Source of the DNA: Macrostomum lignano | Taxonomy: Eukaryota | Assembly (NCBI GenBank): GCA_002269645.1 | Contig: NIVC01001672.1 | Coordinates: 252,105 to 296,399 of the forward strand | Direction of reading: 5' to 3' | Length of the DNA stretch: 44,295 nucleotides | Shown here: positions 19,621 through 44,295 of the stretch, piece by piece | Layout of the letters: each line of letters opens with the position of its first letter | Numbering within the stretch: the first letter of the stretch is position 1 | Notes under the pieces: generated by a model | Seen by the model: only the letters and a program-made list of their open reading frames with translations | Databases searched by the model: none | What the model was told of the DNA's origin: nothing | Made by a program: the position numbers and the translations under genes

Positions 19621-19991
19621 TCCAATATAAAACGGGCAGTCCTTAAATTCGTGCTGTCTTGGTCCCAATACTAGACCAGCTTGTCAGTGCAGTCCATGGC
19701 GACCAGAAATGATCAGAGAAGAGAATCTTTAACAATCGCTTCTCAGCTGGACTCTGCTGGACGGGGAGTCAGCTTTTGCCGCTGCGAGTGAGCCGGAGTC
19801 TTGTAAAAGCAAAATATAATTGTACGATACCTAAAGTGCGTGCAGCTGCAGGCTACAGGTTACTTTCTCACCTTAAAGAACTAAGCTCGCAACTAAAAAC
19901 AAAACTTGTTCAGCATCTACTCAGCCTCGGATTCTGGGATTTTGTCCTCTCATCGCAGACTTTCTTGACTCGAGCGATCACTTTTGAATCT

Positions 19992-24151: not shown

Positions 24152-27100
24152 ATGAGCGCAGCAGCTCAGACGCCGAGCGGCAACGCTGTCGTTGCCGACT
24201 CCTCACGCAGCGACAGGAATCTGCGCCAGTTCGTGGCCAGCTTCCTGGACTACACCACCGCGCACGGACTCGGTCGCTTCGCTCACCAGTCCAGCCTGCT
24301 CGGCAGGATGATCTGGCTGGCCTTCCTGCTCGGCACCTACAGCGGCTTCGTCTACCACCTGTACACCCTGTTCGGCAGGTTCCTCACCGCCCCGGTGCTC
24401 ACCACCATGACAATGTCCACGCTGTCGTACGAGTTCCCGGATGTGTACATCTGTCCCGCACAAGCCGTCACACTGAGCAGGGCCATTGAGCAGATGCCGA
24501 TAGGCCTAATCAACTGGAGAGAGAATGACAGGACAGTCCAGATCGATTTCAAGATACACTTCTATGAGTTCGACTTGGAGTCTGGGAACTACGCTGCGCA
24601 GAACAAGCCGGCGCAAGCTCTGATGAATGTGCTGCAGAGTGCCGAGAGCTCGCTCATGGCCGAGCTGCAGTTCCCCAAGAGCAGTGAGTTCCTAATATAT
24701 CTGCATCTACAAGTTCATCTTTCTCAGTATTTTATGAGTAGTTCAGTGATTCCCACTGTGCAACGAACTTCTCAGGCAGAGTGGAGTGCAGGACCACGCT
24801 CTCCGGTGAGGATTACTCGGGCAACGCCAGTGTTGCGGTTGTCTACGATCGGACGAAGATGCGAGTCACGGCTTCGAACATTTCTGGCGTGCTGCCGCCA
24901 TTCAGGACGTACAGGCAGTGCATGCAATGGAACGATGCGGCTCAGAGGCTGAGAAGTGTGAACACCAGTTTAACACACAGCCTCGCTGACCGACTGCTGG
25001 CGTTGAACTTCTCCGACAGCGAGTCTCGCTGTCGCTCCCCGCCAGGGCTCCCGCTGTCCGATTTTTTCCCCATCGCGAATCGTGAGTCAAGAGATTGTTT
25101 TGCAAGCTTTATTCGGCTTTATTCGACATTCCAACCGAACCTGGAATTACAGGCCCCACGCTGCGGCTTGTTGGTTGCTTTGAGGCGAACTTCACCGACC
25201 ATGAATTCAACTACACCTGCGACACGGAAGGCATTGTGACTCACGAGACCTGCGCTCACTGTTGCGCTTCGCTCGACTTCAGCCACATCGCGCTGCAAGT
25301 TGACAGCTGCCTGTGCGGAGCGAGTTCCCCAAGCTCCGGCAATGACAGCGGCGTCTGCAGCAGTCGCTGCGCCAGCAACGATCAGCAGCACTGCGGGTCA
25401 GCAACCGCCATCACGGTGCTGCAGCTCGGAGACACAGGTGAGTCTCTTGAATTCTTGTCAGCAGAAGCCTCTATAACTCTAGCCGAGGCTCAATCCGCTT
25501 GCAGAGCCGAGGCCGCTGCAGGTGGGAAACTTCAGCAACCTCACAGTCTTCTCGCACGGGCCCTACTGCTTCTTCACTGATGAGCGAGACAGGCTGGGCG
25601 CTGCGTTCTGCGATGTGCCCTTCTGCCGTGAGTGAGTTTGCCATACCGAGGATTATCTCCTCGGTTACACCGCACGAATGCTACACTTTTTCAGCGATGT
25701 CAGGTGCTTACGACTGCATCGTGAGCTCTGAGAACAAGACCCTTGAGCGGCTGACACGGGCCCGGTACACCGGTAGGAAAAACTACACAATCACCGGGAA
25801 GCCGTGCGTGCCGTGGAGTAAGCTGGAGAAGATACAAGAGGATACGTACATAAGAATGGGTAACTATGCGACCGCTGCATGCACAGAATGCGATAAAATG
25901 CCCGAGTTCGAATTCATATCCATGACTTGCAAACGCCGACTACTCATAGGTTACCACAAGCAGTTCGGATTTCACGTTCAGACTCCGGACTTCAATCCCA
26001 ACAGCAGCGACAATTTCTGCCGATCGGCGCAGATCGTTATCGACCACGGCTCGTACTTTAGTACGCACGAGGCTTAGTAAGAAAATCTTCCTATCGAATT
26101 CTTTCTTTGACTTCTGCTGCATAAAACTTTAAATATGTTTAACTCAGCCTCTGCTTCAATTTATAAAAACATAACTTCAGTCGCTTCGCACAAGAAATGT
26201 CTGATGTGCCGGGCTGCATCCCGGACATCATGGGCTGGGGCGGTCTCTTTGATGCTGACTTTGAGCCCTGCGAGATCCCGCTGTGTTGTAAGTCGCTTTT
26301 TCAGGGCCTTTAGAGCCCTTTGTTGAACAACCGATTGATAGGAAGTTCTCATTCAAAATATCTTTCCTGATCCCGCATTCACATAACATTTAACAGATGC
26401 CGCGGTCCCCAGCGTGACGGGCGCCGTCAGAGACTCAGTCGGCAGCCACCTGCTGGCCCGACAGTTCGGCAGCGACCTCAACGCCGGCCTCGCCGACTGC
26501 AGCTTCGCTGGCCAGAAGTGCACCAAGGACGACTTTGTGAACGTCGCCCACCCGCAGCTGGGCATGTGCCACAAGTTTCTCAAGCAGCGCTTCACCGCCA
26601 ACATGACCAGCACGCAGTTGGCGGAGAGCCAGCTGTCCATCAAGTACTTCACGGACTCGACAGACTCCAAGGGTCAGACGGTGTCCAACATCGACAAGCT
26701 GACGCGGGTAGTGCGAGACAGCCGCGGCTCCGATGCGACTCAGGTCGCATTCAAGGTGAGTCTTCGTCGGTCGCTGAGCGTCTCAATGTCTCACGCAATC
26801 TCTGAGCCTGGCTGCTCAACCGCGAACCCGCAGGCGGTCATCGTTCCGGATAGCTCGTTCCCGTGGGCCTCGAAGGGAATCGATGTGGCCACCGCTCAGC
26901 GCATGGATGTGCAGCTGAGGTTCGACAAGTACTCCAGACTGTCAACTACGTCAAGGCCCTGCCTTGAGACTACGGAGCCGATCACCTACCGACTGCCGTC
27001 ATGGAAGTCGGCTCCATTTAATGAGAACCCGGAGTGAGTCTTCATGCAGAAATATTTTATCGCCGTGAAGACTGCGCACTGACTGATCAATGATTCCCTT

Positions 27101-28278
27101 TACAGCTACAGTTTCGACTTAAATGCGGTTGCCATGGTGACTGATTGGTGGCTGAAAGTTGCCGCAATGGAAGTGCAGCTTCGAAAGCAGAAGCAAGGTG
27201 CATTGAGGTATGGACCATAGGCTTTAGCTTGTGCGAGTGTGACTGCCAGGTTTGCAAAAGTTCCACGCATTTCCCAAATTTGCAGTTCGCTGTCGGAATT
27301 CGACTCAGAATTCAAGCTGACTGACCGAGACGACTGCATCAACAGACACGTTGTGAAGAAGTTCATCGCGGAATGCCACTGCCTGCCGTCGTTCCTGCCG
27401 ATTCCGGTGGAGTACTTTTCGAATTACACCTACTGTTTTGATTTTCAAGCCGCTGGAAACGTGTCCATAGAAACGGACATGTGCTACAGAGAGCAGAAGT
27501 CGAAGGTGCTGGAGTACCAGTTTGCTGCAGTCCGGCTGTGCCAGTCTCCCTGCCGTACAGCCGAGTACAGCGTCCGCCACATCACCTATCCGTGGCCGAA
27601 CCTGAACGGTCTGCAGTCGTTCTCGTTTCTGAAAACCCTGGCCACCGCGTTTGGATACGGCAGCAACCCCAGCGGCCTGAGGGGCCTGAACAGCATCTAC
27701 AGCATCTACCTGAGATCCCTGAGGGATTCGGCCATTCCTGTCAGCAATCGGAGCGCGACAGAAATCCTGAGCTTTCAAAACGAGCTGACGGTGCTGCAGA
27801 ACCGACTGGCTCAGCTGACGGTTCAGGCCTGGACGTCATTCGGCCAGGAGATCTTGGAGGAGGAGGCCTACCCGGCCAAGAACCTCGTGGCCGACATTGG
27901 AGGTGACAATGAGCAGGTTCTGTACTCAGTGACCCTGGATCCCAAGTCTCTCAGGAATTTCAGCTTTCGCATCTCATGCCTAAAATTGCAGGTGCCTTGG
28001 GTCTTTGGTCGGGAATTTCCATTCTGACAGTTTGCGAGCTGCTCGAGCTGTTTATCTACATCGGCCTGGCCATCGGCTACAAATTCCACAGAGTCGCTGC
28101 GCCCCGCAACCGGAACAACGGCGGCCCTGGCGCCAACAACAACTTCAACAACAATTGCACCAATACCGGCAGTGTCCCAACCGTGGCCTCATCTGTTGCT
28201 GGGTGCTCGGAGATGATACAGTCGGCTGTGAGTCAGGACTCTGTCCAGGTTGAGTTGGAGTCCAATTCCAGAATGTAA
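24152..28278 (+). CDS. DEG/ENaC/ASIC-family (amiloride-sensitive type) channel subunit with kringle-WSC-kringle insert, 1069 aa
   Basis: Exons 24152-24683, 24776-25081, 25153-25437, 25505-25627, 25695-25859, 25950-26076, 26181-26287, 26397-26755, 26834-27033, 27106-27207, 27286-27902 and 27992-28278 total 3210 nt with no internal stop. Family motifs: TTAHG, TM1 (IWLAFLLGTYSGFVYHLY), FPDVYICP, CSFAGQKC..DF...GMCHKF, Cys-rich thumb (C...CHCLP...YC...C...CQSPC) and EEEAYP..NLVADIGGALGLWSGISILTVCELLE (TM2 with GxS filter). Confidence 0.93.
24776..25627 (+). other. Kringle-like domain 1 of the channel, interrupted by the WSC exon
   Basis: The N-half in exon 2 has ECRTTLSGEDYSGNAS...RQCMQWN...SRCRSPPG. 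The C-half in exon 4 has GPYCFFTD...AFCDVPFC. Together these give the six kringle Cys with the C-x-x-W, CRxP, PxC and CxVPxC landmarks. Confidence 0.75.
25153..25437 (+). other. WSC domain encoded by a single phase 1-1 exon
   Basis: LVGCFE...THETCAHCCASLDFSHIALQVDSCLCG...VCSSRCASNDQQHCGSATAITV matches the WSC pattern GC...T.E.C...C......L....C.CG...C...C......CG....V. Confidence 0.82.
25695..26287 (+). other. Kringle-like domain 2 of the channel
   Basis: YDCIV...RYTGRKNYTITGKPCVPWSKL...DNFCRS...VPGCIP...PCEIPLC fits the kringle consensus YRG..xTxSGxxCxxW / NYCRNP / PWC / CxIPxC, with expanded loops. Confidence 0.8.
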
Positions 28279-28836
28279 CGAGAAGTCGTGAATGTGGTTT
28301 GAGAATTGATGCCGGAAACTAGAAGTACAGGTGCCTGGTAATTTGTAAGGTCTCCGTAACCAGCCGATGAATATCTATTGACATCTGTTGGCCTTGCTGT
28401 GCTTGGAATTCCTATCTACTAAAGATTTATATAAGCAAAGTTTAAAGAATACAAGTATGTTTCACTCGCTTCATTTTAAATCTTTAATGACAAACCTAAC
28501 GATGTACGAGTATGTTTGGTAAGACATTTTGATGTTAGTTCTCTTCATCTGTTTGTCAGATCAGAAATAGTTTTCACAGAAACCTTTTTCCTTTGCTTAC
28601 TTGTTTTTTTCTTTTTTCCTTTCCTCTTACAAAACTTGACCTTTAAATTCTTATCGTCACTCCTGAATAAATTCGTTTTATTTAGACGTGCCTGTAGAGA
28701 CTTTTCGATCGATGGCTGCACTTTCTCGGCATCTAACTCGGAGAAGCGTCGAACTTTTTAACCCTGAAAAAGTTACTGAAACTTAATCGTGAATACCAAG
28801 ACAGACTTTATTACGCAATAAAACAGCTGCTAGTTG

Positions 28837-28883
28837 ACAGACAGACAGACAGACAGACAGACGCTAAGACAGACAGACGCCAT

Positions 28884-28930
<47 letters not shown>

Positions 28931-28951
28931 GCTAAGACAGACAGACGCCAT

Positions 28952-29002
<51 letters not shown>

Positions 29003-29022
29003 TGACTGACAGACAGACAGAC
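28837..29022. repeat. (GACA)n microsatellite
   Basis: Read directly. Confidence 0.97.
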
Positions 29023-29367
29023 AGATTTCGAGCGTATTTGATTTATCATTCATTCAGTCTGAAACAGCCAGACCAGATCATTTGCGCCAATGGCTCGTGG
29101 CGAGGGAGAAAGACCAGACCGCCAAGACGATTGCCTTCGATGGCGTGTCCCCCTTTAGTGACACCAAACCCGAGCGTGATGTACCGCTGTCCTGTCGTTG
29201 TCTGCACCCCGGTCATGCTGTACTCCAACTGGAGCTTTGGCACCTTCGAGAGCGCCAAAATCATAAACGAGGATGAAGATATGCATTAGTGGCGGAGCCC
29301 ATTAAATGGAGTTCGATGTCAATCCGGAGCTTCCATATAGCAGCGCCGCTGCAATAGCAGTCGCGTG

Positions 29368-29643
29368 ACGTCACTGCTGAGGGAACGTCACTGCTGAGGG
29401 AACGTCACTGCTGAGGGAACGTCACTGCTGAGGGAACGTCACTGCTGAGGGAACGTCACTGCTGAGGGAATGTCACTGCTGAGGGAACGTCAGTGCTGAG
29501 GGAACGTCACTGCTGAGGGAATGTCACTGCTGAGGGAACGTCAGTGCTGAGGGAACGTCACTGCTGAGGGAACGTCACTGCTGAGGGAACGTCACTGCTG
29601 AGGGAACGTCACTGTTGAGGGAACGTCACTGCTGAGGGAACGT
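29368..29643. repeat. 17-bp minisatellite (aacgtcactgctgaggg)
   Basis: About 16 units. Confidence 0.96.
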
Positions 29644-29649
29644 CTGGAG

Positions 29650-30160
29650 AAGCTGGAGAATGGCGCGCTCTCGATCCGTCAGCGACCAACGTCAGGTTCC
29701 ACACACCTTCAGAAAGCAGGAGGCTAAGAAGCTGGAGTAAATGCATCGGCAGAGCAAGCTGACGGTGAAGCTTGACGCTCGATCACTGCCCGCATTGGCA
29801 TTAGGCTCCTTGGTTGGCTGCTCTCAGACCAAGGTCGCCTCGGAGGATCAGCCTGAGGATCCGATTAGGATTCTTTGAGCACCACATCGAGTCACGTCAC
29901 TATCCGAGAACGAGCTTCTTTCTCTGCTTACCGGAGCGTCACGTGCCGGAGCCATCGAGTCTCGCACCGGCTGCGAAGAAGACTGAGACAATCAGGCGGA
30001 GCATCCGTGCCCAACTTCTGTTTTTCTAGGCATGTTTTCAAAGTGGGTGAAAACTGCGGCCCTGAGTCAGATCGACATTGGGTTTTTGGCATTCTGCTCG
30101 GAGAATCAGAGCGGCAGGGATGCCCCCGAGTTCACGAGAGAGCTCAGTCTTAATGCCCTG
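29650..30160 (+). mobile_element. Possible heavily decayed Tc1/mariner transposase relic
   Basis: Remnants RVSHRLRRRLRQSG and HWVFGILLGESE..GCPRV loosely resemble Tc1 VS..TVRRRL..GL and W..V.FSDESRF..GR.RV. No TIRs were seen. Confidence 0.3.
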
Positions 30161-30500
30161 TTGCTCAGACTTCCCCATGCACTAAGCTGCCACACCAGGG
30201 AGTCAACAGCATCATTAATTTAATCAAAATTTAATCAAAATCACCTGCCACCTGCTTCGTCCACAGCGGCTGTCACGGCCTTGCAATAAAAAAATTTGAT
30301 TAGTCTAATTGGACTTCTCACTTTTAATCCTTCAAATCCATTTCAATTTGCAGATAGGTAATTTTCAGTTTTCAGCACCATATTGAAGGCAACAAGCGCT
30401 TGGTTCAGGGCGGTTTCACAAGTTTGTCTGCTTACGAGGCTGCATGGCAAACAATCGAAGTTAAAGCTCTACTCGTTTACAGGGTCTGGCAGACAGCGGG

Positions 30501-30565
30501 TAGGGTTAGGGTTAGGGTTAGGGTTAGGGTTAGGGTTAGGGTTAGGGTTAGGGTTAGGGTTAGGG
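30501..30565 (+). repeat. Interstitial telomere-type tract (TTAGGG)10
   Basis: Ten perfect TTAGGG units at 30506-30565 plus a partial unit. Confidence 0.97.
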
Positions 30566-30819
30566 GTGGCGGCGCGTTGACAATGGCGGCAGCTCGATCC
30601 TGCACTCGTCTGCAAAGTTGCCTACCAGGTTTAGCGAAATGCGCTGCTAATTTTGCCCGTCGGAGCGTTATATTGAATAGCACCAGTTAGTTGAGTGGGA
30701 AATTATGGTAGTACGCACTTGCGTACAGTGTAGTGGCAGCTTCCGTGGTTCCCTAAAGGATGGTATACAGAGCTTTGTGCAATCTGGTGGAAGCAAAGGC
30801 AACCTTAAAATCAATACCC

Positions 30820-30967
30820 GCTGTGTTCGGCTGTGGAGGCTGGCACAGCCGGACCCCAGCAAACTGGTACTCCAGCACCACCTTCGACTGTTGCTCTCTG
30901 CAGCACATGCATGTCCGTTTCCATGGACACGTTTCCAGCGGCTTGAGAATCAAAACAGTGAAGGTGT
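30820..30967 (-). pseudogene. Decayed inverted copy of part of channel exon 11 (source ~27426-27570)
   Basis: The reverse complement reads ...actgttttgattctcaagccgctggaaacgtgtccatggaaacggacat...gtcgaaggtggtgctggagtaccagtttgctggggtccggctgtgccag. It aligns directly to 27426-27570 with small duplications (catg, ggt) that shift the frame. Confidence 0.85.
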
Positions 30968-31026
30968 CAATGAACCATTCATAAAATACATGGACTGCTC
31001 AAGTAGAAGGGCAAGAAACTAAAATT

Positions 31027-31260
31027 CTTGGAAAATGTTAGGAGGCAGGTCATTAAGCTAAGAATGATATGCTATTAAAATAGATTCATAAAGCCAATGA
31101 GTCTAGTTGTTCCATTTTTATGATTATTAGGCATAGGGCATGTACGATTGTAAATGTACGTAGGATATGCAATTAGCATAGAATCCTAATTTTATACACG
31201 AAATCTATAGCTATAAGAAAGGCGAGACATATCAAAAGATGAACATTGGTCTTCCTTCTA
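31027..31260 (+). mobile_element. Internally deleted copy of the 38326-38838 element
   Basis: Starts with cttggaaaatgttaggaggcag (left-end match), then attaagctaagaatga..aatagattcataaa..caattagcata..tcctaatttt..tataagaaaggc..atatcaaaagatgaacat, matching 38588-38730. Confidence 0.6.
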
Positions 31261-31282
31261 TTAATTGGGTTGGGTTGGGTAT

Positions 31283-31500
31283 GGGTTGTAGCCTAGTGGT
31301 CAGAGCGTCGGACTCACGACTTGAAGGTCGGGGGTTCGATTCTCAACCCACTCGGAACAATTTTGTGTCCTTGAGCAAGACACTCAACTATGCATTGATT
31401 CAGTTCACCCAGCTGTAAAATGGGCACCAGCATTAGCTGGGGTAATTGAGGCTGTGTGTGGCGACCCAGTCCTTGGACTGAACAGCCGTACGCAGCCTTC
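31283..31500 (+). mobile_element. tRNA-derived SINE with CORE-like central domain (3' end uncertain)
   Basis: A box TAGCCTAGTGG (31289-31299) and B box GGTTCGATTCT (31333-31343). These are followed by gtgtccttgagcaagacactcaac...ttcacccagctgtaaaatggg, which resembles the MIR/CORE consensus GTGACCTTGGGCAAGTCACTTAAC...CTGTAAAATGGG. Confidence 0.75.
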
Positions 31501-31647
31501 AGATGCGCCGCTCAATAGCTGCGGCTGAGCTGTCGGTTGCACATCTGGCCAAACTGGGGCAAGGTGTAATCAACTATTGCTTGCTCCCTGTCACTGCGTG
31601 GAGGAGCCAGCAGCAAAATGTCTCCTCTGGCCTGGCGACGCGAAAAA

Positions 31648-32605
31648 ACATGGTAGACATGTTAGACATGGTAGACATGTTAGACATGGTAGACATGGTG
31701 GACATGGTAGACATGTTAGACATGGTAGACATGTTAGACATGGTAGACATGTTAGAACATGGTACACATGTTAGACATGGTAGACATGTTAGACATGGTA
31801 GACATGTTAGACATGGTAGACATGGCAGACATGGTACACATGTTAGACATGGTAGACATGTTAGACATGGTAGACATGGCAGACATGGTACACATGTTAG
31901 ACATGGTAGACATGTTAGACATGGTAGACATGGTAGACATGGTAGACATGTTAGATATGGTAGACATGGTACACATGTTAGACATGGTAGACATGTTAGA
32001 CATGGTAGACATGTTAGACATGGTAGACATGTTAGACATGGTAGACATGTTAGACATGGTAGACATGTTAGACATGGTAGACATGTTAGACATGGTAGAC
32101 ATGTTAGACATGGTAGACATGTTAGACATGGTAGACATGGTAGACATGGTAGACATGTTAGACATGGTAGACATGGTAGACATGGTAGATATGGTAGACA
32201 TGGTAGACATGGTAGACATGGTAGACATGTTAGACATGGTAGATATGGTAGACATGGTAGACATGTTAGACATGGTAGACATGGCAGACATGGTACACAT
32301 GTTAGACATGGTAGACATGTTAGACATGGTAGACATGGTAGACATGGTAGACATGTTAGATATGGTAGACATGGTACACATGTTAGACATGGTAGACATG
32401 TTAGACATGGTAGACATGTTAGACATGGTAGACATGTTAGACATGGTAGACATGTTAGACATGGTAGACATGTTAGACATGGTAGACATGGTAGACATGG
32501 TAGACATGTTAGACATTTTAGACATGGTAGACATGTTAGACATGGTAGACATTTTTGACATGTTAGACATGGTAGACATTTTTGACATGTTAGACATGGT
32601 AGACA
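31648..32605. repeat. 9-bp minisatellite (tagacatg[g/t])
   Basis: About 105 units; produces the spurious MVDMLD, RHVRHG and MSTMSN ORFs. Confidence 0.97.
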
Positions 32606-33554
32606 TTACAAGCGCGCCAACACTGTACGCAGGCACGCACTCATACACGCTCACACAGGGTGTACAGCGGCTCTGGCTTTCTAATCGTCAGGCTTGTAGT
32701 CTCTGCGCCTTGGTGGTTGGTCCTCATGCGATTGAATCGCACAGAAATCCCCGACAGCCGAATGAATGCCATGGGTCGCAGAGTGAGAGCCGGATGCTCA
32801 ACTCCTCAGCCGATGCTTGATGTGGTTATGATTAACGCGTTAGGACAGCTGGCTACTTAAACAGCATTACGTACTACTATAAAGAGTAGCAACCTGGCAT
32901 GTCGCTCTACTTCTACTAGCATAGTGGTCCTCGTTACCCCAGCATGTTTAAAGCTGCTGATTGCAAACTAGCTCGTAGAACTGTAGTGTGCTCTGCATAT
33001 GAGAAGTACTTTTCCGCACTCGAGCACTTTGGAAGGAAATTTTTTCGAGTCTGCACGATTCATCATCGTCTATTGGGACAGTTGCTGGCGCCAATTATTG
33101 GGCTTAAAAATCGAGCGAAATCGAAACCGCGCGCATTTTGCATAATTTTATAGGCATGCTGTGCGGCTTACTGATTGCTGACGGACACCCGCGAATCCAG
33201 CGAGGAGGCCAGGATCACGCCTCGCTTGTGCACAGAGCATTTGAGACAAGCCCCCGGCACATTTTCGGAATCAAACCCAGGTACTTTGGTGGATGTGTCG
33301 GACTTCATCAGAATCTGATTTTGAATTCTGATTTAAGTTACTTATACTGCCCCCGCCGCGTGCGCAGGCAGCGATGCCATCCAATGTGAAGCCCTGGGAG
33401 ACTGGGAATCCAAGAGGACAGAGCACATCGAACCCATTGAGCAGAGCTGCATGCTCACTGGAAAGCCGGATGTACTTTTTGTTGGTGCTGGTCTGGCCAT
33501 CTGTATGAGCTGCTGCCCAGCCCAGACAGAGACGCGAAAGTCAGCAGCGGGACT

Positions 33555-33890
33555 GATGTCGCTTTTGTTGTATTTTAGTTCTCGGACCTCCTGTAGTTAC
33601 AGTGATGTCGCTTTTGTTGCATTTTAGTTCTCTGACCTCCTGTAGTTACAGTGATGTCGTTTTTGTTGCATTTTAGCTCTCTGACCTCCTGTAGTTACAG
33701 TGATGTCGTTTTTGTTGCATTTTAGTTCTCTGACCTCCTGTAGTTACAGTGATGTCGCTTTTGTTGCATTTTAGTTCTCTGACCTCCTGTAGGTACAGTG
33801 ATGTCGTTTTTGTTGCATTTTAGCTCTCTGACCTCCTGTAGGTACAGTGATGTCGCTTTTGTTGCATTTTAGTTCTCTGACCTCCTGTGG
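33555..33890. repeat. 49-bp minisatellite (gatgtcgcttttgttgcattttagttctctgacctcctgtagttacagt)
   Basis: About 7 units. Confidence 0.95.
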
Positions 33891-34519
33891 GTACAATCTG
33901 TTTTATTTCTGCACTACATACATGTAACTGCAGCCCGTGCTGTGAATGCGGTCCCCACTCTGACTTTCGCTCTGTTGCAGCATCTTCAGAATCTCAGCTC
34001 AGTAGTCCGCGCTCGCCTCACACAATTCTATGTCTCGCTAATGCATTGAATGCTACACATTTCATTGGTAAATGGCTATATGCCAATTGTTATCAGTTAA
34101 TTATGATTAGGGAACAATGAGTATGGAGTTTGAGGACTGTGAGGGACAAGTGGGTGGTCAGCGGTGTGCAAGTGGGTGGTCAGGGGTTCAGTGGAATGCG
34201 CATGACTGCTGCCCCTTCACCGGCTTTGAGTCGACTGTCGCCTCGCGGTAGTGCCTCAAGCCCCATGATCAAACTAAATTGGATGACTGCTCTCTGGCTT
34301 AGTCTGAGTGCTTCTGCCTGCCCTCTGGCTTCATTTTCAGTTGCCTGTCGGCTCACTGGCTCTCCTGTGCGGCAGTGCAGTTTTGTTCACTATGGAATTA
34401 GCTCGGAATTAAATAAATCTTATTAATTAGTTTTTTCGAAGTCCAGAGCCGGTCTTTGACGCTCTCAGCTTATCAACCTTTGTTGCTTGTCTGCTTGCTC
34501 GAAGACTGCTCACAGCGGA

Positions 34520-35000
34520 ATTTTCGAAATCATGTTAAAAGCACAAAAGCCCCGAGCATCCAGATCTGTATCGATGCTGCTGGAGTGGCAGAGCTCATTT
34601 CTAAGAATAACAAGCAACAACTCGATCAGAGCTGCTTCTTTTGCAAGCTTTTTCTTGACTCATGAAAATTTCTGCCCAGATTCTGCCGGCTGAGGCGCTC
34701 GCAGGATGGATCATCCTCGCAATGGCTCGGGCCTGTGTGCGTCAGGCCCGACTTCAGATGGTGGCAGATACGGAAAAGCTATTAAAAATATTTATCCATG
34801 GAGTGCACCGGAACAGCACAGTGCAGTGAGGCGGCTAATAGATGTAGGCCAAGAGTTTTTAAAAGTACAATCATGAGACTTCTCTTGGTAGACGTGGGAC
34901 ACGATAGCAAAGACAGGGACAAGAACCAATAAGAAGATGGAACACTTTCGAGAACTTCTTCACCAGCAGTCTGTCGACCAGGCTTCCTGCTCCGCTAATC
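34520..35000 (+). mobile_element. Decayed RTE-clade LINE ORF2 fragment (endonuclease-RT linker)
   Basis: Frameshifted remnants QMVADT..AIKNIYP and RW-EHFRELLHQQSVD resemble the RTE linker motifs AD...F..A.K.IYGP and RWKEHFEELLN. Recognised by eye only. Confidence 0.5.
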
Positions 35001-37180
35001 TTTATAACCTGAGCTTCATCGCTCCGCAACGTGAACAACCGGGCGTCTCTTGAGTGTCAGTAGCAATGAAATTGACTTGACGTGGCGTGGCGTGACGCAG
35101 CTGCTCCAGACACCTGATTTTGGTGAGACAATCATTAGCAGCAGATCAGGATTGGAGCCAGTCGTTACTTGACAAATGCTTCGGAAAATTCCAGGAAACT
35201 GTACAGAGCACCTGAAACAGCCTCACCTGTACTGTAGTCCGATACGAAGACTTTCCTCAGCAGTGCATTCTGTGCGCTCTCCAGGACGCGATGAAGAACC
35301 ATATTTAGTCAAGTCGCGGGGTTTCCCAGCTGGAGTCGCCGACGCCGCAGCAGGTCACTTTTGGACGGACCACCAGGCCTGCGCGGCAATGAAGCACCGT
35401 GTTGACTTTCAGGTCAAATGCCGATCTTGAAAGCGGTGCGCAGCAGGCCAGTGTGTACCGTCGCAATTTCGCGGTTCGCGGCGACAATGTCGGTTTCAAA
35501 GACCTCCAAGGAGACAAAGTGCTGGCATTCCAGCGAATGACCGAATTTCCGACGGCCTACAAAAGTTATCGAAATTACCCCTGATCTACTGGTTAATTTC
35601 GGATGCACACGGATGGGCAGCTTGGGGAATCTCGCCACTGTGCGTGGAATCCATTTAGTATCGACCGCGGCTCGAGAGCCGCAGGATGAGCGGTACAGGT
35701 AAGGAGGTGCGCGAAGTCATGGCGTTTGGCTCTGCGCAGGGAACAGGAAGATCGGTAACGTCGAAGCAGTCACCGCAGTAGATGCCAGAGCTTGTAGGAA
35801 TCTTCCAAACAGAGGAACAGAGGCCGAGATCAGCCTGCAGATGGGGCGCTGGCCTGCTTAAAGAGCTTGTGCAGTCGAAAAGCCTATCCAATTGTGCTTA
35901 AAGAGCTTGTGCAGTCGAAAAGCCTATCCAACTGTGCTTAAGGCTCGACTGCCTCAGACGCTCAGACTACGGGAAGGTCCAGACTCTCTGAGCCATGCAG
36001 AGCGAGAGCCAACGATTAAATACAGGAATTGCTGGTTTGTTAGTACAGCTAAATTTATTGGGTGGGAGTCCAGACGAAGATGGCAGCAACTGAATATTAG
36101 AGACAAATATTAAAAATATGGTATATAACAGTAGTGTTGAATTATTATCATGCATGTCCGCGGTCTGTGACTGCAGGGCTGAGCAGCCGCATCCAGACCC
36201 CGGCGTTGAAACTGGGAAAGGATTTTTTTATGAAAGCCCAGCTCGTTTAATTTATTGCTAGGGGTTGGTTATTAAAATAAATTTGTCGATGCAAATGGCT
36301 CAGAAGAAGCCGGCAGCAGCCGATTGAGGCGGCAGGCAATGCAGGTGACGGTGCCGAGGGCTCGTGTTTTATTGTGAAAAAGCACCTGCCTGCTTTACCC
36401 CAACTGGCCTCATAAAATGGCGACTGAGAGCTGGGAGGCCGCTGGGCTGCTGCACGGATCCCCTCTGATAAATGAGCTGAGCCGCAGGGTCTGAAAAAAT
36501 GATCCACAAACCCATGGTCCTGCGTTTGCCAACAGAAAGGAAGGAAAATGCTGTTTTGATGCCTTCAAAAATGGAGTCATGATCTCCGAGCGGAGAATAT
36601 ATTTTAGAATCACCTGGGCATACATGACTCGTATGTACTGCAGCAGATTGGCGACGCTATGACCGGCTGCACACCTCAGCTGAATAGCAGTGACTTAGAC
36701 AGTGGTCGAAGTTGAGTCATCGTGTTGACGGTTGGGAGGTGAGACAAACTTCTCGTAGAATTTTGAGGTGCGCGCGCGCGCCCCTTGTCAGCCTCGTCCT
36801 ACCTGACGCGTGACTCTGGGTTAACTCGACATTTCATGAGCCCCCCCCCCCTGCAGCTCATCAATACCAGTGCTCATATGCTGTCCGACTGATTCGTGCT
36901 GCCACAGTCGGTGCAGGAAGTGCCGCTGCTGACTCTGCTCTGAGACGCTGCTGCTATATGGGAGTCGAGTATTGCTTGATGGTGTGCCTTATATTCCATT
37001 AATGGTCCTTGGCTGCTATTAACTGTGAGGGCATCCGGAAGCAATTGTTCACTTCTTCGATGAAGGCACTCGATGAGTGATGGGCCCGGAGATGCACCTA
37101 ATTCGGTCCGGTCAGGCAGGCGAACTGAGACTCCAACTGAGGCTTTGAGTCCCGGAGTTCACCTTGACTGCTCAGGTGAT

Positions 37181-37547
37181 TTTTTTATTATTTTTTTTAG
37201 AGGCAGGGGGTTGTGTGCACCCTGGCGCACTTTAAGCGACATAGGCACACAACCGGCGAGAGGCATTACTGCCCATTCCGCCGACTCCCCTGAGCAGGCA
37301 TACAAGCGCGTGGATACGTACGCAGGCACACACTCACACAGGAGTGTACAGCGGCCCTAACTTTATATTATCGTTAGGCATGTACACTTCACTGCGCCTT
37401 GGGGGTTGCTCTCAAGGCCGTTAATTGCACGAGCAGAGCCAAGCCGAGATTCCAATTCAGCCCCAAATTAATGTGACTGCACTTGGAATCGAGCCTGGGT
37501 CGCTGGCACACCAGAGCAGCTGCGCTACCGCTGGGCTACGGCCCCCT
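37181..37547 (-). mobile_element. Full-length tRNA-derived SINE with A-rich tail and 13-bp target-site duplication
   Basis: The minus-strand head gggggccgTAGCCCAGCGGtagc...GGCTCGATTCC carries Pol III A and B boxes. The 3' tail is ctaaaaaaataataaaaaaa. CTGCTCAGGTGAT flanks it on both sides (37168-37180 and 37548-37560). Confidence 0.88.
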
Positions 37548-38014
37548 CTGCTCAGGTGATGCCTGGATTGGCTCAATGAGGTCTAGCTGCCATCGCCTCA
37601 CTCAGAGCTGGGTAAAACAGTATTCATGTGTGTTACGAGCCCGAGAGAAGAGTGCCATTGAAATGGCACACAAATGCAATTCGCATTAAACTCACGCCGA
37701 CGGAGATTCGGTTTTGCTACATGTCAAATGTGGCGGCTGGCTTGTTTAACTGGCTCTGGTACGGCTGCCCCCGACTCCACTGCAGCCGTCAAGCATTTAG
37801 AGAGAATAGAGACAAATGTTGCCAAGCCGCACTAGCATTGGACTCAGACTGCTCTGGGATGGGCAGTATGAGGCTCAGATGATCAGCTCTAGCCAGTGCA
37901 GAGCAGGGAGTCATCGGGGGGGGGGGTAGCTCCGCGCTTAAACAAATTTATTTTTTGTTTATGATCATTTCAAAAATTAATTTCATGCGTCTGAATTTTG
38001 TGCCAATGTGTCCG

Positions 38015-38210
38015 CGCCAGTTACGTCACCTCTAAGCTGTCTCGCGCGAGACAGTTACGTCACCTCTAAGCTGTCTCGCGCCAGTTACGTCACCTCTAAG
38101 CTGTCTCGCGCGAGACAATTACGTCACCTCTAAGCTGTCTCGCGCGAGACAGTTACGTCACCTCTAAGCTGTCTCGCGCCAGTTACGTCACCTCTAAGCT
38201 GTCTCGCGCC
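38015..38210. repeat. ~31-37-bp tandem repeat (agttacgtcacctctaagctgtctcgcgc[gagac])
   Basis: About 6 units; some contain the perfect palindrome gtctcgcgcgagac. Confidence 0.93.
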
Positions 38211-38325
38211 ACGATAAGAAAGCCAGGGCCGCTGTACACTCTGTATGATCACAGTCCAGAGCCCCTGAAACAGGATCGAAACAGGGAACCAACTTTTCTC
38301 GATCAAAGTGCTTCTACTTCGTTTC

Positions 38326-38838
38326 CTGGAAAATTTCAGGAGGCAGATTTTACTAAAAATACATTACGAAGATTGGAGGTTTTCATATTTTTAGCACAAA
38401 GAGTTGTAATTAATTTTGATAGGAGACAGACCCAATGTTCATCTTTTGATTTTCCTAGAGTTTTTCATTTAGAAACATTAAGGATTCTATTGTAATTTTA
38501 CATCCTGATGGCTAAAAATCATTAAAAATGGCATAAATCAACTATTTTAATGATTATATGAATCTGTTTTATCAATCTGTTACACTCATTAAGCTAAGAA
38601 TGAAAATAGATTCATAAATTTTATCAATACAATTAGCATAAAGTCCTAATTTTCTAAACGAAAAGACCTCTATGAATATCAACAGTTATAAGAAAGGCAA
38701 TAAATATCAAAAGATGAACATGGGGTCTGCCTTTTATCACAAGGAATAACAATATTTGTGCCAAAGAAACGAAAACCTCCAATCTCCGTATTGTGTTGTT
38801 TTGGTAAAACCTGACTCCAAAATTTTCCAAGAGGCAGT
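38326..38838. mobile_element. Decayed foldback/MITE-like element with ~130-bp imperfect terminal inverted repeats
   Basis: 38326-38452 (ctggaaaattt..ggaggcag..gattggaggttttc..gcacaaa..cagacccaatgttcatcttttgat) is the reverse complement of ~38705-38838. The interior is AT-rich. Confidence 0.65.
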
Positions 38839-39609
38839 TTCTCATCCTTCTACTTGAGCAGTTCTTGGTCATAGCTTTCCACCGCATAGGCTCATGTGTG
38901 CCTGCATTATTTATTTTACTAATTGCATAAAGTAGCCAGACAAGACTTGATTTACGATGCAGCCGTGCTTTGCACCAAAATAGGGTGACTTGACGACTTT
39001 AAGATTTGTTTTAAAGACGTTCAGAGGCTTTATTAAAGTGAAAATAGGCATAAGACGGTAAGCGTTGTACGCGAAGAAATATCAAGAGAGAAGATTGTGT
39101 AGAGAACAGTTGTGCAAGTAGCTGAGAGCATGCTGTGCTGCTGCACTTACATGTAGCAGAAAAAATAATAACACGTGCATTCATAAAAGTTTTGAAGCTG
39201 GTTTGGTAAGTGCATAAAATCTGGGGTTAGTTGAGTTGCTCAAAGTTAACAGTAAAATTATCAAGTTGCTTACGAGTGCTTTGTAGAAAAGGGGGCCAAT
39301 CTTAACTGCTGGCCACTCTTTGCTGCACCTGAATCTGAATGGAACACGGAAGGCGCACAAAAATCCATGAAATTGTGGGGCAAAACTCCAGTGAGGGTCC
39401 AGCGTGTACGCAGAGGGGCCACCATCAGCCCCCTACATAAATTTCCCGCTTCCAAATACTAAATGAAAGAGGCAACCAAGTTCTACGACAGGAGCTCAAA
39501 TTTTGCCACCTCTTGGGCAGGGCATCCATCGCCTGGGAGACAGGGGTACGGGAGCCACTGAAAACCTGTAAGCATCCTGTCAGATAGAGAGCCTAACCCA
39601 TGCGGGCCA

Positions 39610-39775
39610 GAGGAGGGGAGAGAGGAGAGAGAATACAGAAGGGAGATGAGAGATAAGAGAAAGGAGAGGAGAGACGAGGAGATGAGAGAGAAAAGAGAGA
39701 GAGAAGAGAAGAGAGGAGAGAGAAAGAGACAGAGGAGATTAGATAGAAGAGAGCTGAGAAGAGACACAAGCCGTG
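39610..39775. repeat. GA-rich low-complexity tract
   Basis: Read directly. Confidence 0.9.
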
Positions 39776-40859
39776 AGCAGGCCGGATTGCTATTGTGAAG
39801 TTTCAAAGGACCCGAGGGCCGGATAGAGGCTTTGCAGGCGTGAGTCTGCGGACCCCTGGTGAAGGATCTCAACGCCCTAATCTGAGTTGACGCCAAAATT
39901 ATTATTAGATATTAAAATGAAAAAATCATATAGGCAATGAAAATTAAGGACACCAAATACGAGCTATTGACACCACGCCTATTAGGCCTCCTGCGTACGG
40001 CACTCCATTGGTCATGCAGAGGTTCCCCACAAAGGCCACCAATTTCTGATCCCTGATTCCCGAAATTCCCCTCTAGATCTGCCGCCGTTCGCTGCTCAAG
40101 AGCTCAGTGACAAATATTGGCCTGCGCTAGCAGCTAGTGCAACATGTGGCAGGATATGCTTGGTGATCAATTGTCGTGTGGCTGCAAACTCTGGCGTCAG
40201 GAAACGCTTCTACGAGTAGTGCAATATTTCTAGCAGCTATTGATTTTCTAAAATATGTTTTGGGATCCCGACTGCATTCCCAATGGTTTAACCAAGAAGG
40301 TCCCGCTGGTGAACTCAATCCTACAACCGCTATTGTCACTAGATAACCTTGACGCATGTATGCACGAGTATGCACGGGCAATGTGAAAAGTACTTTATAT
40401 TGTATAAAGCTCGCACCGCCACAACCAAGCTTCATAATAATGTCACTTGCACTTCATTCATTTCTGCAGCCAAAAGACCACAGTCCACAATGCCTCGCTT
40501 AATCAACTGCATCATCCAGCAACAGCGTTCAACACTGCTGCATTCTCATGCACTCTCATGGAATTCTCCCTCACTGTTGTCCTAAGTCCTAAGATATGCA
40601 ATCTGGACCGCAAAGAAATTGGTGATTAAAATTTCTGTGTGAAAGCTTTAGTTTGAAAGCTTGTTCCCAGGGACTTCCAGGTTAGGTGAGGGCAGCGCAA
40701 AGTCAGGGTCTCCTCAATGTTTGCGGTTCTGTTTAATGTGCTGGCGGTGGCAAAGGTTAAACAACTTGGAGGACCCAAAACTAACAGCTTTAGAGAGATT
40801 TACAAGAATGGAGGCCGCACACAGGGATTGGGAGGCTCAGACTTGAGCATTATTATGCC

Positions 40860-43800
40860 TTACTGCGTCCGTATCGAGCGCGACCATCTCTGACTCCGGC
40901 CTGGCCGACTCTTCGGGCTGACCGTCGGCGTTTTTTGACTGCATCCGGGCTGCGCCTGCACTCTGGCAGCCAGCGCCTGTCCCAGGTAGATGAAGAGCTC
41001 CAGCAGCTCGCAGATAGTTAGGATTGAGATGCCGGACCAGAGACCCAGAGCTCCTGAAATTCATTTTGTATTAACGGTTTTTCAATACTGAAAGACTTGT
41101 GAGCATGATCAACCTGGACCACTTACCCCCGATGTCGGCCACCAGGTTCTTGGCTGGGTAGGCCTCCTCCTCTGAGACTTCGTGGCGCGGGACTGCCAGG
41201 CCTGGACCGTCAGCTGAGACAGGCGGTTCTGCACGCCGCCAGCTCGCTTTCGAAGCTCTGAATTGCCTCGGTGCTCCGGTTGATGACGGAGTGTCAGAGA
41301 GGTTCTGAGCCTTAAGGTAAAGGTAGTAGATGCTTGAGGCGCCTCTCATCAAGCTGATATCGTGTCGATAGCCAAAGTCGGCGGCCAACTTCTTCAGAAA
41401 GTCGAGAGACTGCACCGAGAGCAAGTTCGGCCACGGGTAGGTGATGTAGCGGGTGCTGAAGTCGGTCTTGCTGCAGGGCGACTTGCATTCGTTCATGGCT
41501 TCAAAATGGTACTGCGTGATCTTCGACACCTGCTCAATGTAGCACTTCTCAGTGTTGGCCGAAATGTTTCCCCTTGAGTACATGTCGAAGCAGTAGCTGA
41601 GCTTTTTGAACCGCTCTTCTTGAATGGGAAGCATCCCCGGCAGGCATCGGCAGGTGTTGGTGAATTTTTCGACAACATAAGTGTTGACGCAGTTCTCTCT
41701 GTCCGAGACTTTGAACTGACTACCCGAGACTGTCAGTGCGCTGAAGTCATGGAATTAAAATTATTGCAAAATTCGATTTGACATGCTGAAATTCCCAGAA
41801 GCAGAGAAGCGCGAAAAAGGAGGGTTTTATGCAAAATCTTACCTTGAGCCGTTCAGTTTAAGCAGCGCGTTGCGCAACATAGACAGCTTCAGCGTCCAGT
41901 TGGAAGATCGCATAATTTCCTGCGCATCCGAGTTGACGCTGGAAGCAAATTTTTAGTTTTAAACAGCTTTGATATTTACAATATTGCAGACTAAAGATAA
42001 GGAAATAAAACTTTTTGCTTTCTTTACCCAGAGTCCTCATTTGACGTAAACAGCTTCCATGACGGCAGTCGGTAGGTGATCGGCTCCGTAGTCTCAAGGC
42101 AAGGCCTCGATGAGGTGGACAGTCTGGAGTACTTGTCGAATCTAAGATGCACGTCCATGCGCTGAGCGGTGGCCACATTGACGCCGTTCGAGGCCCACGG
42201 GAACGAGCTATCCGGGACGATGACCGCCTGCGGGTTCGCGGTTGAGCAGCCAGGCTCAGAGATTGCGTGAGACACTGAGACGCCCAGCGACCGATGAAGA
42301 CTCACCTTGAATGCGACCTGAGTCGCATCGGAGCCGCGGCTGTCTCGCACCACCCGCGTCAGCTTGTCGATGTTGGACACCGTCTGACCCTTGGAGTCTG
42401 TCGAGTCCGTGAAGTACTTGATGGACAGCTGGCTCTCCGCCAACTGCGTGCTGGTCATGTTGGCGGTGAAGCGCTGCTTGAGAAACTTGTGGCACATGCC
42501 CAGCTGCGGTGGGCGACGTTCAAAAGTCGTCCTTGGTGCACTTCTGGCCAGCGAAGCTGCACTCGGTGAGGCCGGCGTTGAGGTCGCTGCCGAACTGTCG
42601 GGCCAGCAGGTGCTCACCGACGGAGTCTCTGATTGTGGCTGTCACGCTGGGGACCTCGGTGTCTAAAGAAATTCATTCGTACAGAATGCACTGAAAACAA
42701 TGCCTAGAATATAATAATAAATAATAACGAGAAACAGATCCAGCTCAATTGTCACTGGCGCAACTCACAACAGAGTGGCACATTACAGGTCTGAAAGATC
42801 ATGTTAAACAGGTAGCCAAATTTTATCGTAATGGACGGAATGTTGCCCAGAAATCTTCCGGAATGCACACAGGAACCTCCGAATCGATGGCGCTAAACCG
42901 CCTAAAATAATAGGAAAGATTTTGGAGCGCTGCAACAAGCACACATACGCTACTTGCGATGCAATACGAAGCTTACTGGAAGTCCTTGGGCCCGTGGATG
43001 TTGACAGAATCGACCACAACGCTAACCGGACGGCAGTAATTGTCGCTCTCGCCTTCAAGCCTGTCCGGAGTCTGGATAAGCATTTCCCGCACTTCGTCCA
43101 TGAAGCCAACTTCCGAACCTAAATTGAATTTGACTGGTTCGATCAGGCGAAATTAAATTTGCCAGCGGCACAGGTGAGCAATGCAATCGAAGCTCTTACC
43201 GCGGCGCGCCTTGAGAACTTGCTCAATTGTGGACAGCTGACTCCAGGGCATGCACCGCCGGCCAGTGCTGGTGACGTTCCGACGTCCGGTGTAGCGCGAC
43301 AGCCTTTGCTGCTGAGTCAGCTTGTCCTCGGAGCTCACGATGCAGTCGTAGTTCTCGAAATTTCTGGATTGAGCGATGGAACGTCAAGTATTTCATTCAC
43401 GAATCGAAGTCGTCTTGAAAGGAAAAGTCAGGCAACATGTTGGAAACTCACGGCAGTAGGGAATTTCGCAGAATGCAGCGTTCAGCTTGTCGCTCAGCTC
43501 ATCCGCGAAAAAGCAGTAGGGCCCGCTGGAGATTGCGTCCAGGTCGCTGAAGTTTGCGACGTGCAACGGCCTGCTGCCTACAAAGTGGAATGCGTGCCTT
43601 GAGCTGCGAGTTACGAGTCTGCAGAATGACCTGATTTTGCCAGCAATATACAAGTGACCATAAAAATCTGTCCCAGTCGTCAACTTATCGGTTTTATTGA
43701 GCTACTTTTGAGTAGCAACCAATCTCTAACCCGCTCTCCGACTATCCCACCTACCGTTGTCCCGAATCTGCAGAACAGTGACGGCAGTTTCCGATCCACA

Positions 43801-44295
43801 GATTGCCGAATTGTCGTGGAGGCAGGAGGCGTTGCACACGCTGCTGCTGTTCTCGTAGCCGCCAATGCTGCTCCCGCAGAAGCAGTCCTGGCGGCTGATC
43901 GCCATGTACTGGAAGCTGCGCCTGCCGCAGCATTCAGCGCAGGTTCGAGCGAGCTCAAGCCGCCCCGGTAGCAGGTGAAGTTGAACGAACTCGAGTTGGT
44001 CAGCGCAAGGGGAAGGCAGCCGGCGTGCCGAAACACCGAGCCTGTGGTGTTGGCAGGACCGGAAATCTCCATCCGTGTGACCTGATCGAGACAAACAAAT
44101 CGGACAAACAGATGGAAACTCACGGCTAGCGATAGGAAAGAACTCAGACAGAGGCAGCCCAGGCGGCGAGCGGCACCGGGACTCGCTGTCTGAAAAGTTC
44201 AGCGCCAGCAGTCTGTTAGCCAGGCCACTTTCGCCGAGGCTCAGCAGTTTTTGAGCTGCATCGTCCACCTCATGCACTGCTTGACGCCTCTGTAC
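40860..44295 (-). CDS. Second DEG/ENaC subunit with the same kringle-WSC-kringle insert; 5' part lies beyond the window; frameshifted as assembled (sequence errors or pseudogene)
   Basis: Exons (minus) >44295-44124, 44041-43755, 43577-43452, 43363-43200, 43118-42977, 42901-42769, 42662-42306, 42227-42028, 41938-41843, 41740-41127 and 41053-40860, at the same intron positions and phases as the 24152-28278 gene. Motifs: SRCRSPPG, WSC (HAGC...RTCAECC...CFCG...CNASC...ICGS), GPYCFF...CEIPYC, RYTGRRNVTSTGRRCMPW, DNYCRP, NLVADIGGALGLWSGISILTICELLE. At least 9 one-base deletions must be corrected. Confidence 0.85.

Follow-up and report, generated by a model that had tools for sequence, protein, structure and literature searches.

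A DEG/ENaC channel paralog with kringle-like and WSC modules in Macrostomum lignano, with a gene-conversion tract and probable assembly frameshifts

Two inverted copies of an ion channel gene lie in a 44,295-nucleotide (nt) stretch of Macrostomum lignano DNA (positions 252,105 to 296,399 of contig NIVC01001672.1, assembly GCA_002269645.1), which we call the window and whose own numbering is used throughout. The first copy, on the plus strand, is referred to here as gene 1, and the copy flagged in an earlier note on this DNA, on the minus strand, as gene 2. Taken as a whole, our analysis makes it likely that gene 2 is a conserved DEG/ENaC paralog with kringle-like and WSC modules, that its product belongs to a trimeric channel, that it shares a gene-conversion tract with gene 1, and that the frameshifts in its assembled sequence are technical in origin. 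The gene is already deposited in GenBank, as the uncharacterised protein BOX15_Mlig006056g1 (1049 amino acids; P0002 below), which a protein search identified as the intact counterpart of gene 2.

A DEG/ENaC subunit with an enlarged finger region

Against the Pfam ASC model (PF00858, cutoff 23.6 bits), P0002 scores 146.6 bits (1.6e-42) and gene 1 scores 135.4 bits. Both carry the conserved motifs of DEG/ENaC channels, namely HG (TTAHGLGRF), FPDVYIC after the first transmembrane helix (TM1) and WSGISILT in the second (TM2). In a sequence search of the PDB, the closest solved relatives of P0002 were FaNaC (7yvb/8on7), ASIC1, ENaC gamma and Drosophila PPK26, and the likeness to these channels takes in two transmembrane helices, the HG and FPxVxxC motifs, a cysteine-rich thumb, the G-x-S filter and the Pfam ASC match. 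By these sequence features gene 2 encodes a DEG/ENaC (ASC-family) channel subunit. Where it departs from FaNaC is in the variable finger region: residues 106-572 of P0002 replace FaNaC residues 160-196, so that about 466 residues, including two kringle-like modules and a WSC domain, stand where FaNaC has about 36.

Within this insert we recognise an extracellular finger cassette of approximately 385 residues, in which a kringle-like module is split by a nested WSC domain and followed by a second kringle-like module. The order of motifs places the WSC exon between the third and fourth cysteines (Cys) of kringle 1. The eight-Cys pattern of the WSC domain is invariant in the family alignment, and the domain matches yeast Wsc1 (PDB 7pz2) both by sequence (1.6e-4) and by structure comparison with Foldseek (probability 1.0). 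Its Pfam scores (PF01822, cutoff 27.8 bits) fall just below the cutoff for P0002 (26.4) and gene 1 (26.3), and reach 39.1 and 41.1 bits for the family members P0010 and P0008. The kringle framework of six invariant Cys and signature motifs is present in module 2, and also in module 1 when the WSC exon is taken to be inserted there; a PDB search with a profile of module 2 built from the paralogs returned almost only kringle proteins, with weak matches (E at least 0.002), and UniProt names P0018 and P0025 "Kringle domain-containing". Two observations count against a firm assignment. The gathering score of Pfam Kringle (PF00051), 34.3 bits, is never reached, the best score being 24.2 bits (P0018) and those of genes 1 and 2 lying at 14.8-17.4 bits (14.8 for module 2 of P0002); and the AlphaFold model of the P0002 cassette is of low confidence (predicted local distance difference test, pLDDT, 62), so that its fold matches are suggestive only.

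How might such a cassette have come to sit in a channel? Its exons are bounded by phase-1 introns (introns 1-5 and 7 of gene 1, introns 2-5 and 7 of gene 2), the pattern that would be expected if the cassette was assembled by exon shuffling. The only type of solved protein retrieved with both kringle and WSC domains was Kremen1/2 (PDB 5fws, 5fwt, 5fwu, 5fwv), matched by Foldseek next after Wsc1, with a probability of 0.98-0.99 over about 170 columns and with low TM-scores, which are due to the poor model of the cassette. Kremen is a single-pass receptor with kringle, WSC and CUB domains in series, whereas the M. lignano cassette has its WSC domain inside kringle 1, has a second kringle, lacks a CUB domain and is embedded in a channel subunit. 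Yeast Wsc1 and polycystin-1 have the WSC fold in common with the cassette (Foldseek TM-score 0.6 on the Wsc1 target), in a different molecular context; a link between WSC domains and mechanosensing is an analogy drawn from yeast Wsc1, which is a mechanosensor. Precedents for lineage-specific finger inserts, and for heteromers of paralogs, are the extra Cys-rich domains of Caenorhabditis elegans MEC-4/MEC-10 and the GRIP domain of ENaC, neither of which consists of kringle or WSC modules. In the literature searched, no DEG/ENaC channel was described as having a kringle or WSC module.

Structure and paralogy of genes 1 and 2

The splice sites of gene 2 (Table 1) were placed independently, using scored junctions in the window sequence together with the paralog, and were then transferred to the P0002 locus on contig NIVC01004126.1 of GCA_002269645.1 (L001). 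There the spliced translation is identical to P0002 at every residue as far as an additional intron at the 3' end. L001 is 98.7% identical to window positions 44295-40558, and the likeness extends into the spacer between the two genes; exon 1 of gene 2 and the first 130 nt of its exon 2 fall outside the window. The earlier note had ended gene 2 at a TAA stop at 40860-40862, a reading that has to be given up: in the transcript-derived model these bases are part of the donor GCA/GTAAGG of intron 12 (40863-39335, 1.5 kb), after which a 10-codon terminal exon follows. The C-terminal tail of gene 2 is thereby split by an intron, whereas that of gene 1 is unspliced and unrelated. An older UniProt model of the gene 1 type (P0001, 1362 amino acids) joins repeat-derived open reading frames (ORFs) at 19776-21057 (+) to the gene 1 channel and also reads through intron 2, and is unreliable at both ends.

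Six-frame self-comparison of the window by tblastx, with which blastn agrees, reveals a colinear inverted paralogy of 44225-40975 (-) with 24980-28070 (+), the minus-strand similarity of gene 2 running from the window end at 44295 to about 40975. The end of gene 1 at 28278 lies 12.58 kb from the TAA at 40860-40862, in agreement with the tail-to-tail spacing of about 12.6 kb reported before. In the alignment of the two proteins all 11 shared introns are equal in phase, and the ten introns that the earlier note had compared in the window (introns 2-11) occupy identical columns, with phases 1,1,1,1,2,1,0,2,2,1. Its statement that every Cys is kept holds for the extracellular part, where 35 of 35 aligned Cys are common to both genes, those not shared being confined to the cytoplasmic N- and C-terminal tails. 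The near-identical TM2 (ADIGGALGLWSGISILT[V/I]CELLE) reads as quoted; since third-codon-position identity between the genes is only 0.37 there, the match reflects selection and not conversion. Substantial divergence of the other regions is borne out as well, with amino-acid identities of 39% in the WSC domain, 43% in kringle 2 and 55% in exon 11 (thumb), and of 39-67% over most of the length of the proteins.

Outside the conversion tract described below, synonymous divergence (dS) between the genes ranges from about 0.6 to saturation and the ratio of nonsynonymous to synonymous divergence (dN/dS) from 0.04 to 0.6. The comparison identifies the two genes as paralogs that separated long ago and lie inverted, tail to tail, and dN/dS, the extracellular Cys and the intron structure together support constraint on the cassette in the form of purifying selection. 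The earlier claim that conservation through long divergence marks the cassette as functional is supported, on these same three observations, for the sequence outside the tract; it does not extend to exons 8-9, which have been homogenised recently. As evidence against function, that note had named a dN/dS near 1 together with a lack of transcripts; what we find is the range given above and a transcript-derived model of the intact copy. In gene 2, the kringle(WSC)-kringle finger insert is seen to be a conserved and selected feature of the family, rather than a one-off artefact of a gene model.

Table 1. Features of the window, in window coordinates
Feature	Position	Strand	Details
Gene 1, intact paralog	24152..28278	+	12 exons, 1069 amino acids; no frame problem; Pfam ASC 3.8e-39, WSC 8.6e-6
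Gene 2, exons 2 (cut by window end) to 12	40864..44295	-	GT/AG signals and paralog
Gene 2, exons 2-5	44295-44124, 44041-43755, 43577-43452, 43363-43200	-	
Gene 2, exons 6-9	43118-42977, 42901-42769, 42662-42306, 42227-42028	-	
Gene 2, exons 10-12	41938-41843, 41740-41127, 41053-40864	-	
Gene 2, terminal exon (IQVQQRVASS, then stop)	39302..39334	-	transcript-based model, C-terminus of P0002
Exon 3, assigned as WSC domain	43755..44041	-	two phase-1 flanking introns; between Cys3 and Cys4 of kringle 1
Exons 5-7, kringle-like module 2	42769..43363	-	six Cys; YTGxxNxTxSGxxCxxW, DNYCR, CxxPLC
Gene 2 TM2 with GIS selectivity-filter motif, ALGLWSGISILTICELLELFIYLG	40975..41053	-	comparison with gene 1
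Gene-conversion tract (assigned from sequence comparison), exon 8, intron 8 and exon 9	42054..42659 (gene 1: 26400-27007, +)	-	94.4% nt identity, 608 nt
Ten frameshifting 1-nt deletions in gene 2 exons	40950..44265	-	global alignment with L001
Relic exon-11-like fragment in spacer	30824..30967	-	86% identical to gene 1 27426-27559; 1-4-nt indels

A gene-conversion tract across exons 8 and 9

Exon 8, intron 8 and exon 9 of gene 2 are 94-98% identical to their counterparts in gene 1. The core of this tract (42612-42187 against 26447-26874) aligns over 428 nt with 7 substitutions, and 158 nt of it match without interruption. Exon 8 has a dS of 0.065, against 0.6 to saturation elsewhere, and intron 8 (78 nt) is 96% identical between the paralogs, while all other intron pairs are unalignable; in L001, intron 8 differs from that of gene 1 by a single base. 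The low exon 8 dS, the near-identical intron and the diverged flanks identify the tract, of about 0.6 kb, as the product of a recent interlocus gene conversion between the inverted paralogs. That the block instead reflects extreme purifying selection would fit with exons 8-9 also being the best-conserved protein segment in other paralogs (approximately 60-70% identity in P0005, P0006 and P0010), but selection on the protein would not be expected to leave intron 8 and the synonymous sites of exon 8 nearly unchanged, and where selection has evidently conserved the protein (TM2; LANRLLALNFSDSESRCRSPPGLPLSEFFPIASR, LANRLL..IASR) third-position identity is only 0.37-0.50. We therefore regard selection as a very improbable explanation of the block. 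The conversion is otherwise an ordinary example of the exchange known from inverted tandem paralogs, here with a tract of about 0.4-0.6 kb across an intron and a spacing of 12.6 kb, and the tract needs to be masked in any dN/dS or phylogenetic work on the two genes.

Frameshifts in the window copy of gene 2

As assembled in the window, gene 2 does not encode an intact protein: without correction, its spliced message runs into a stop codon 17 codons in from the window edge. Relative to L001, its exons carry one-base deletions at approximately 44265, 43946, 43352, 42846, 42526, 42510, 41290, 41234, 41187 and 40950, of which the one at 42526 produces an in-frame TGA directly after KCTKDDF. Once ten placeholders are inserted, the translation agrees with P0002 along 838 residues, except for some six amino-acid substitutions. 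Two ways in which splicing might remove this TGA were considered and rejected: a 21-nt GT..AG segment of gene 1 is too short and has no GT in gene 2, and a 38-nt alternative intron leads into the wrong frame.

The ten frameshifts are, with high probability, consensus errors of long-read sequencing, in the form of homopolymer contractions, rather than the lesions of a pseudogene. Alignment with L001 over 3.76 kb shows 26 substitutions, 3 insertions and 22 one-base deletions in the window, and in 20 of these 22 deletions the lost base belongs to a homopolymer run of at least 2 bases. At all ten exon sites it is the L001 state that keeps the ORF. Introns 2-11 contain 9 deletions in the window and none in L001 (two-sided binomial, about 0.004), an asymmetry that selection cannot explain. 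The coding sequence (CDS) of 2.5 kb has acquired neither a nonsense substitution nor a multi-nucleotide indel relative to L001. It is the homopolymer bias, the intron asymmetry, the indel-to-substitution ratio of about 1:1 and the lack of nonsense substitutions that together argue for error. The M. lignano assemblies are based on PacBio reads, and a published comparison of them finds differing base accuracy and ORF intactness (PMC5730564).

Some observations, however, pull the other way. Gene 1, only 12.6 kb away, has no frameshift in a CDS of 3.2 kb, so that any error process would have to vary locally; the density of deletions indeed rises from 0-1 per kb at 33-35 kb to 5-6 per kb at 41-44 kb; and the rest of the window is almost wholly tandem repeats, leaving no other gene by which to gauge the frameshift rate. 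Moreover, the window and L001 are different DNA molecules, which diverge by 0.3-3% in substitutions and also differ in structure at 38-40.5 kb, and the window could thus hold a separate homeologous copy that is truly dead. Gene 2 of the window would then be a real and very young pseudogene, redundant beside the intact Mlig006056, as its homeolog or duplicate, in a neopolyploid genome. The M. lignano genome, with three subgenomes and 180 Mb of blocks at least 95% identical, would leave redundant copies free to decay, and a decayed family fragment is already present in the spacer (Table 1). A decaying gene, by contrast, would be expected to follow a natural mutational spectrum, from which the indel-to-substitution ratio is far removed. 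Every indel at 41-44 kb is a deletion of one base, mostly in a short homopolymer; the deletions are as common in introns as in exons, and their one-sidedness in introns is beyond the reach of selection; and there are only about six amino-acid changes against P0002, with no nonsense substitution. We consider the pseudogene improbable on this balance. If the frameshifts are sequencing errors, users of this region of the assembly would wrongly call gene 2 a pseudogene, and the intact copy in GCA_002269645.1 is preferable.

Family, transcription and proposed function

The earlier description of a small channel subfamily agrees with our searches. At least 7 distinct members bear the cassette: the gene 1 type (P0001), the gene 2 type (P0002/P0004), Mlig013355 (P0003/P0005), P0006/P0007/P0013, Mlig034226 (P0008), Mlig007204/028168 (P0010) and P0016, in addition to a P0018 lineage with kringle modules only. 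When 1.84 billion representatives were scanned exhaustively with HMMER, 16 proteins reached an E of at most 1e-30, and among these representatives no such insert was found in a non-Macrostomum protein. A protein search likewise retrieved M. lignano proteins almost exclusively, and the close relatives whose source was checked are all from M. lignano. The Macrostomum family offers a possible system in which to study how new extracellular sensors arise in DEG/ENaC channels, in a species for which transgenesis tools exist (PMC5730564).

The intact copy of gene 2 appears to be transcribed, given that the GenBank annotation of Mlig_3_7 was built from a genome-guided transcript assembly (PMC5730564). 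Counting against a firm reading of gene 2 as an expressed channel gene, this conclusion comes from the way the annotation was built and not from reads, and we found no expression data for Mlig006056 in the literature searched and one supplement. Three other M. lignano DEG/ENaC genes gave no peptide responses in oocytes (PMC9234716).

What might the channel do? The gene 2 protein would be expected to form trimeric, Na+-permeable channels, in which the kringle/WSC cassette may be an integral module that binds a ligand (glycan, matrix or protein) and could be coupled to gating through the finger. The earlier note had also proposed that the two genes may make up a heteromer pair. In its strong form, genes 1 and 2 would be obligate or preferential partners in one heterotrimeric channel that carries two different kringle/WSC inserts. 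In its favour, DEG/ENaC channels assemble as trimers, often from different subunits; the two genes are neighbours with a common architecture; and exons 8-9, part of the conserved extracellular core, are nearly identical between them. This near-identity, however, covers an intron and synonymous sites, so it points to conversion and not to selection on a shared interface. The family has at least 7 paralogs, allowing many combinations, and adjacency therefore does not make these two a pair; as tail-to-tail genes 12.6 kb apart they have no common promoter, and no gene-1-type protein was found among the GenBank transcript-derived models of M. lignano. We judge such an obligate or preferential pairing unlikely.

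A broader and quite speculative picture, to which we give little credence at present, would be that of a private Macrostomum subfamily that gained, through shuffling of phase-1 exons, a Kremen-like kringle/WSC module whose WSC exon came to lie within a kringle. Placed in the finger, a region relevant to gating, the module would act as a receptor or tether for matrix or glycans, neighbouring genes would co-assemble and gene conversion would keep their core compatible. If this were true, genes 1 and 2 would, on co-assembly, combine different binding specificities in one trimer.

Surroundings of the two genes

Apart from genes 1 and 2, the window consists largely of repeats. Minisatellites are very dense at 1-24000 and 28800-38200, where Tandem Repeats Finder (TRF) reports 41 rows with units of 8-141 nt and arrays of up to 1.1 kb, and the long ORFs beyond genes 1 and 2 are for the most part translations of repeats. 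The window as a whole is eukaryotic in character, with short GT-AG introns alongside its many minisatellites. In the spacer, a weak match resembling the region after TM1 (E 0.16) lies at 35723-35812 (-), about 5 kb upstream of the relic exon-11-like fragment and on the same strand, and both could derive from a third copy of the family that has since decayed.

About 260 nt from the relic fragment, positions 30501-30565 hold a perfect interstitial array of the telomere type, (TTAGGG) x 10.8, which is also present in the homologous stretch of L001 and may have a bearing on the chromosome fusions reported in M. lignano. Further along, 38018-40568 is 93.5% identical to L001 9184-11775, with many multi-base indels, whereas the flanks are 98.7-99.3% identical; the difference looks like real structural variation between haplotypes or homeologs around a 34-nt tandem array.

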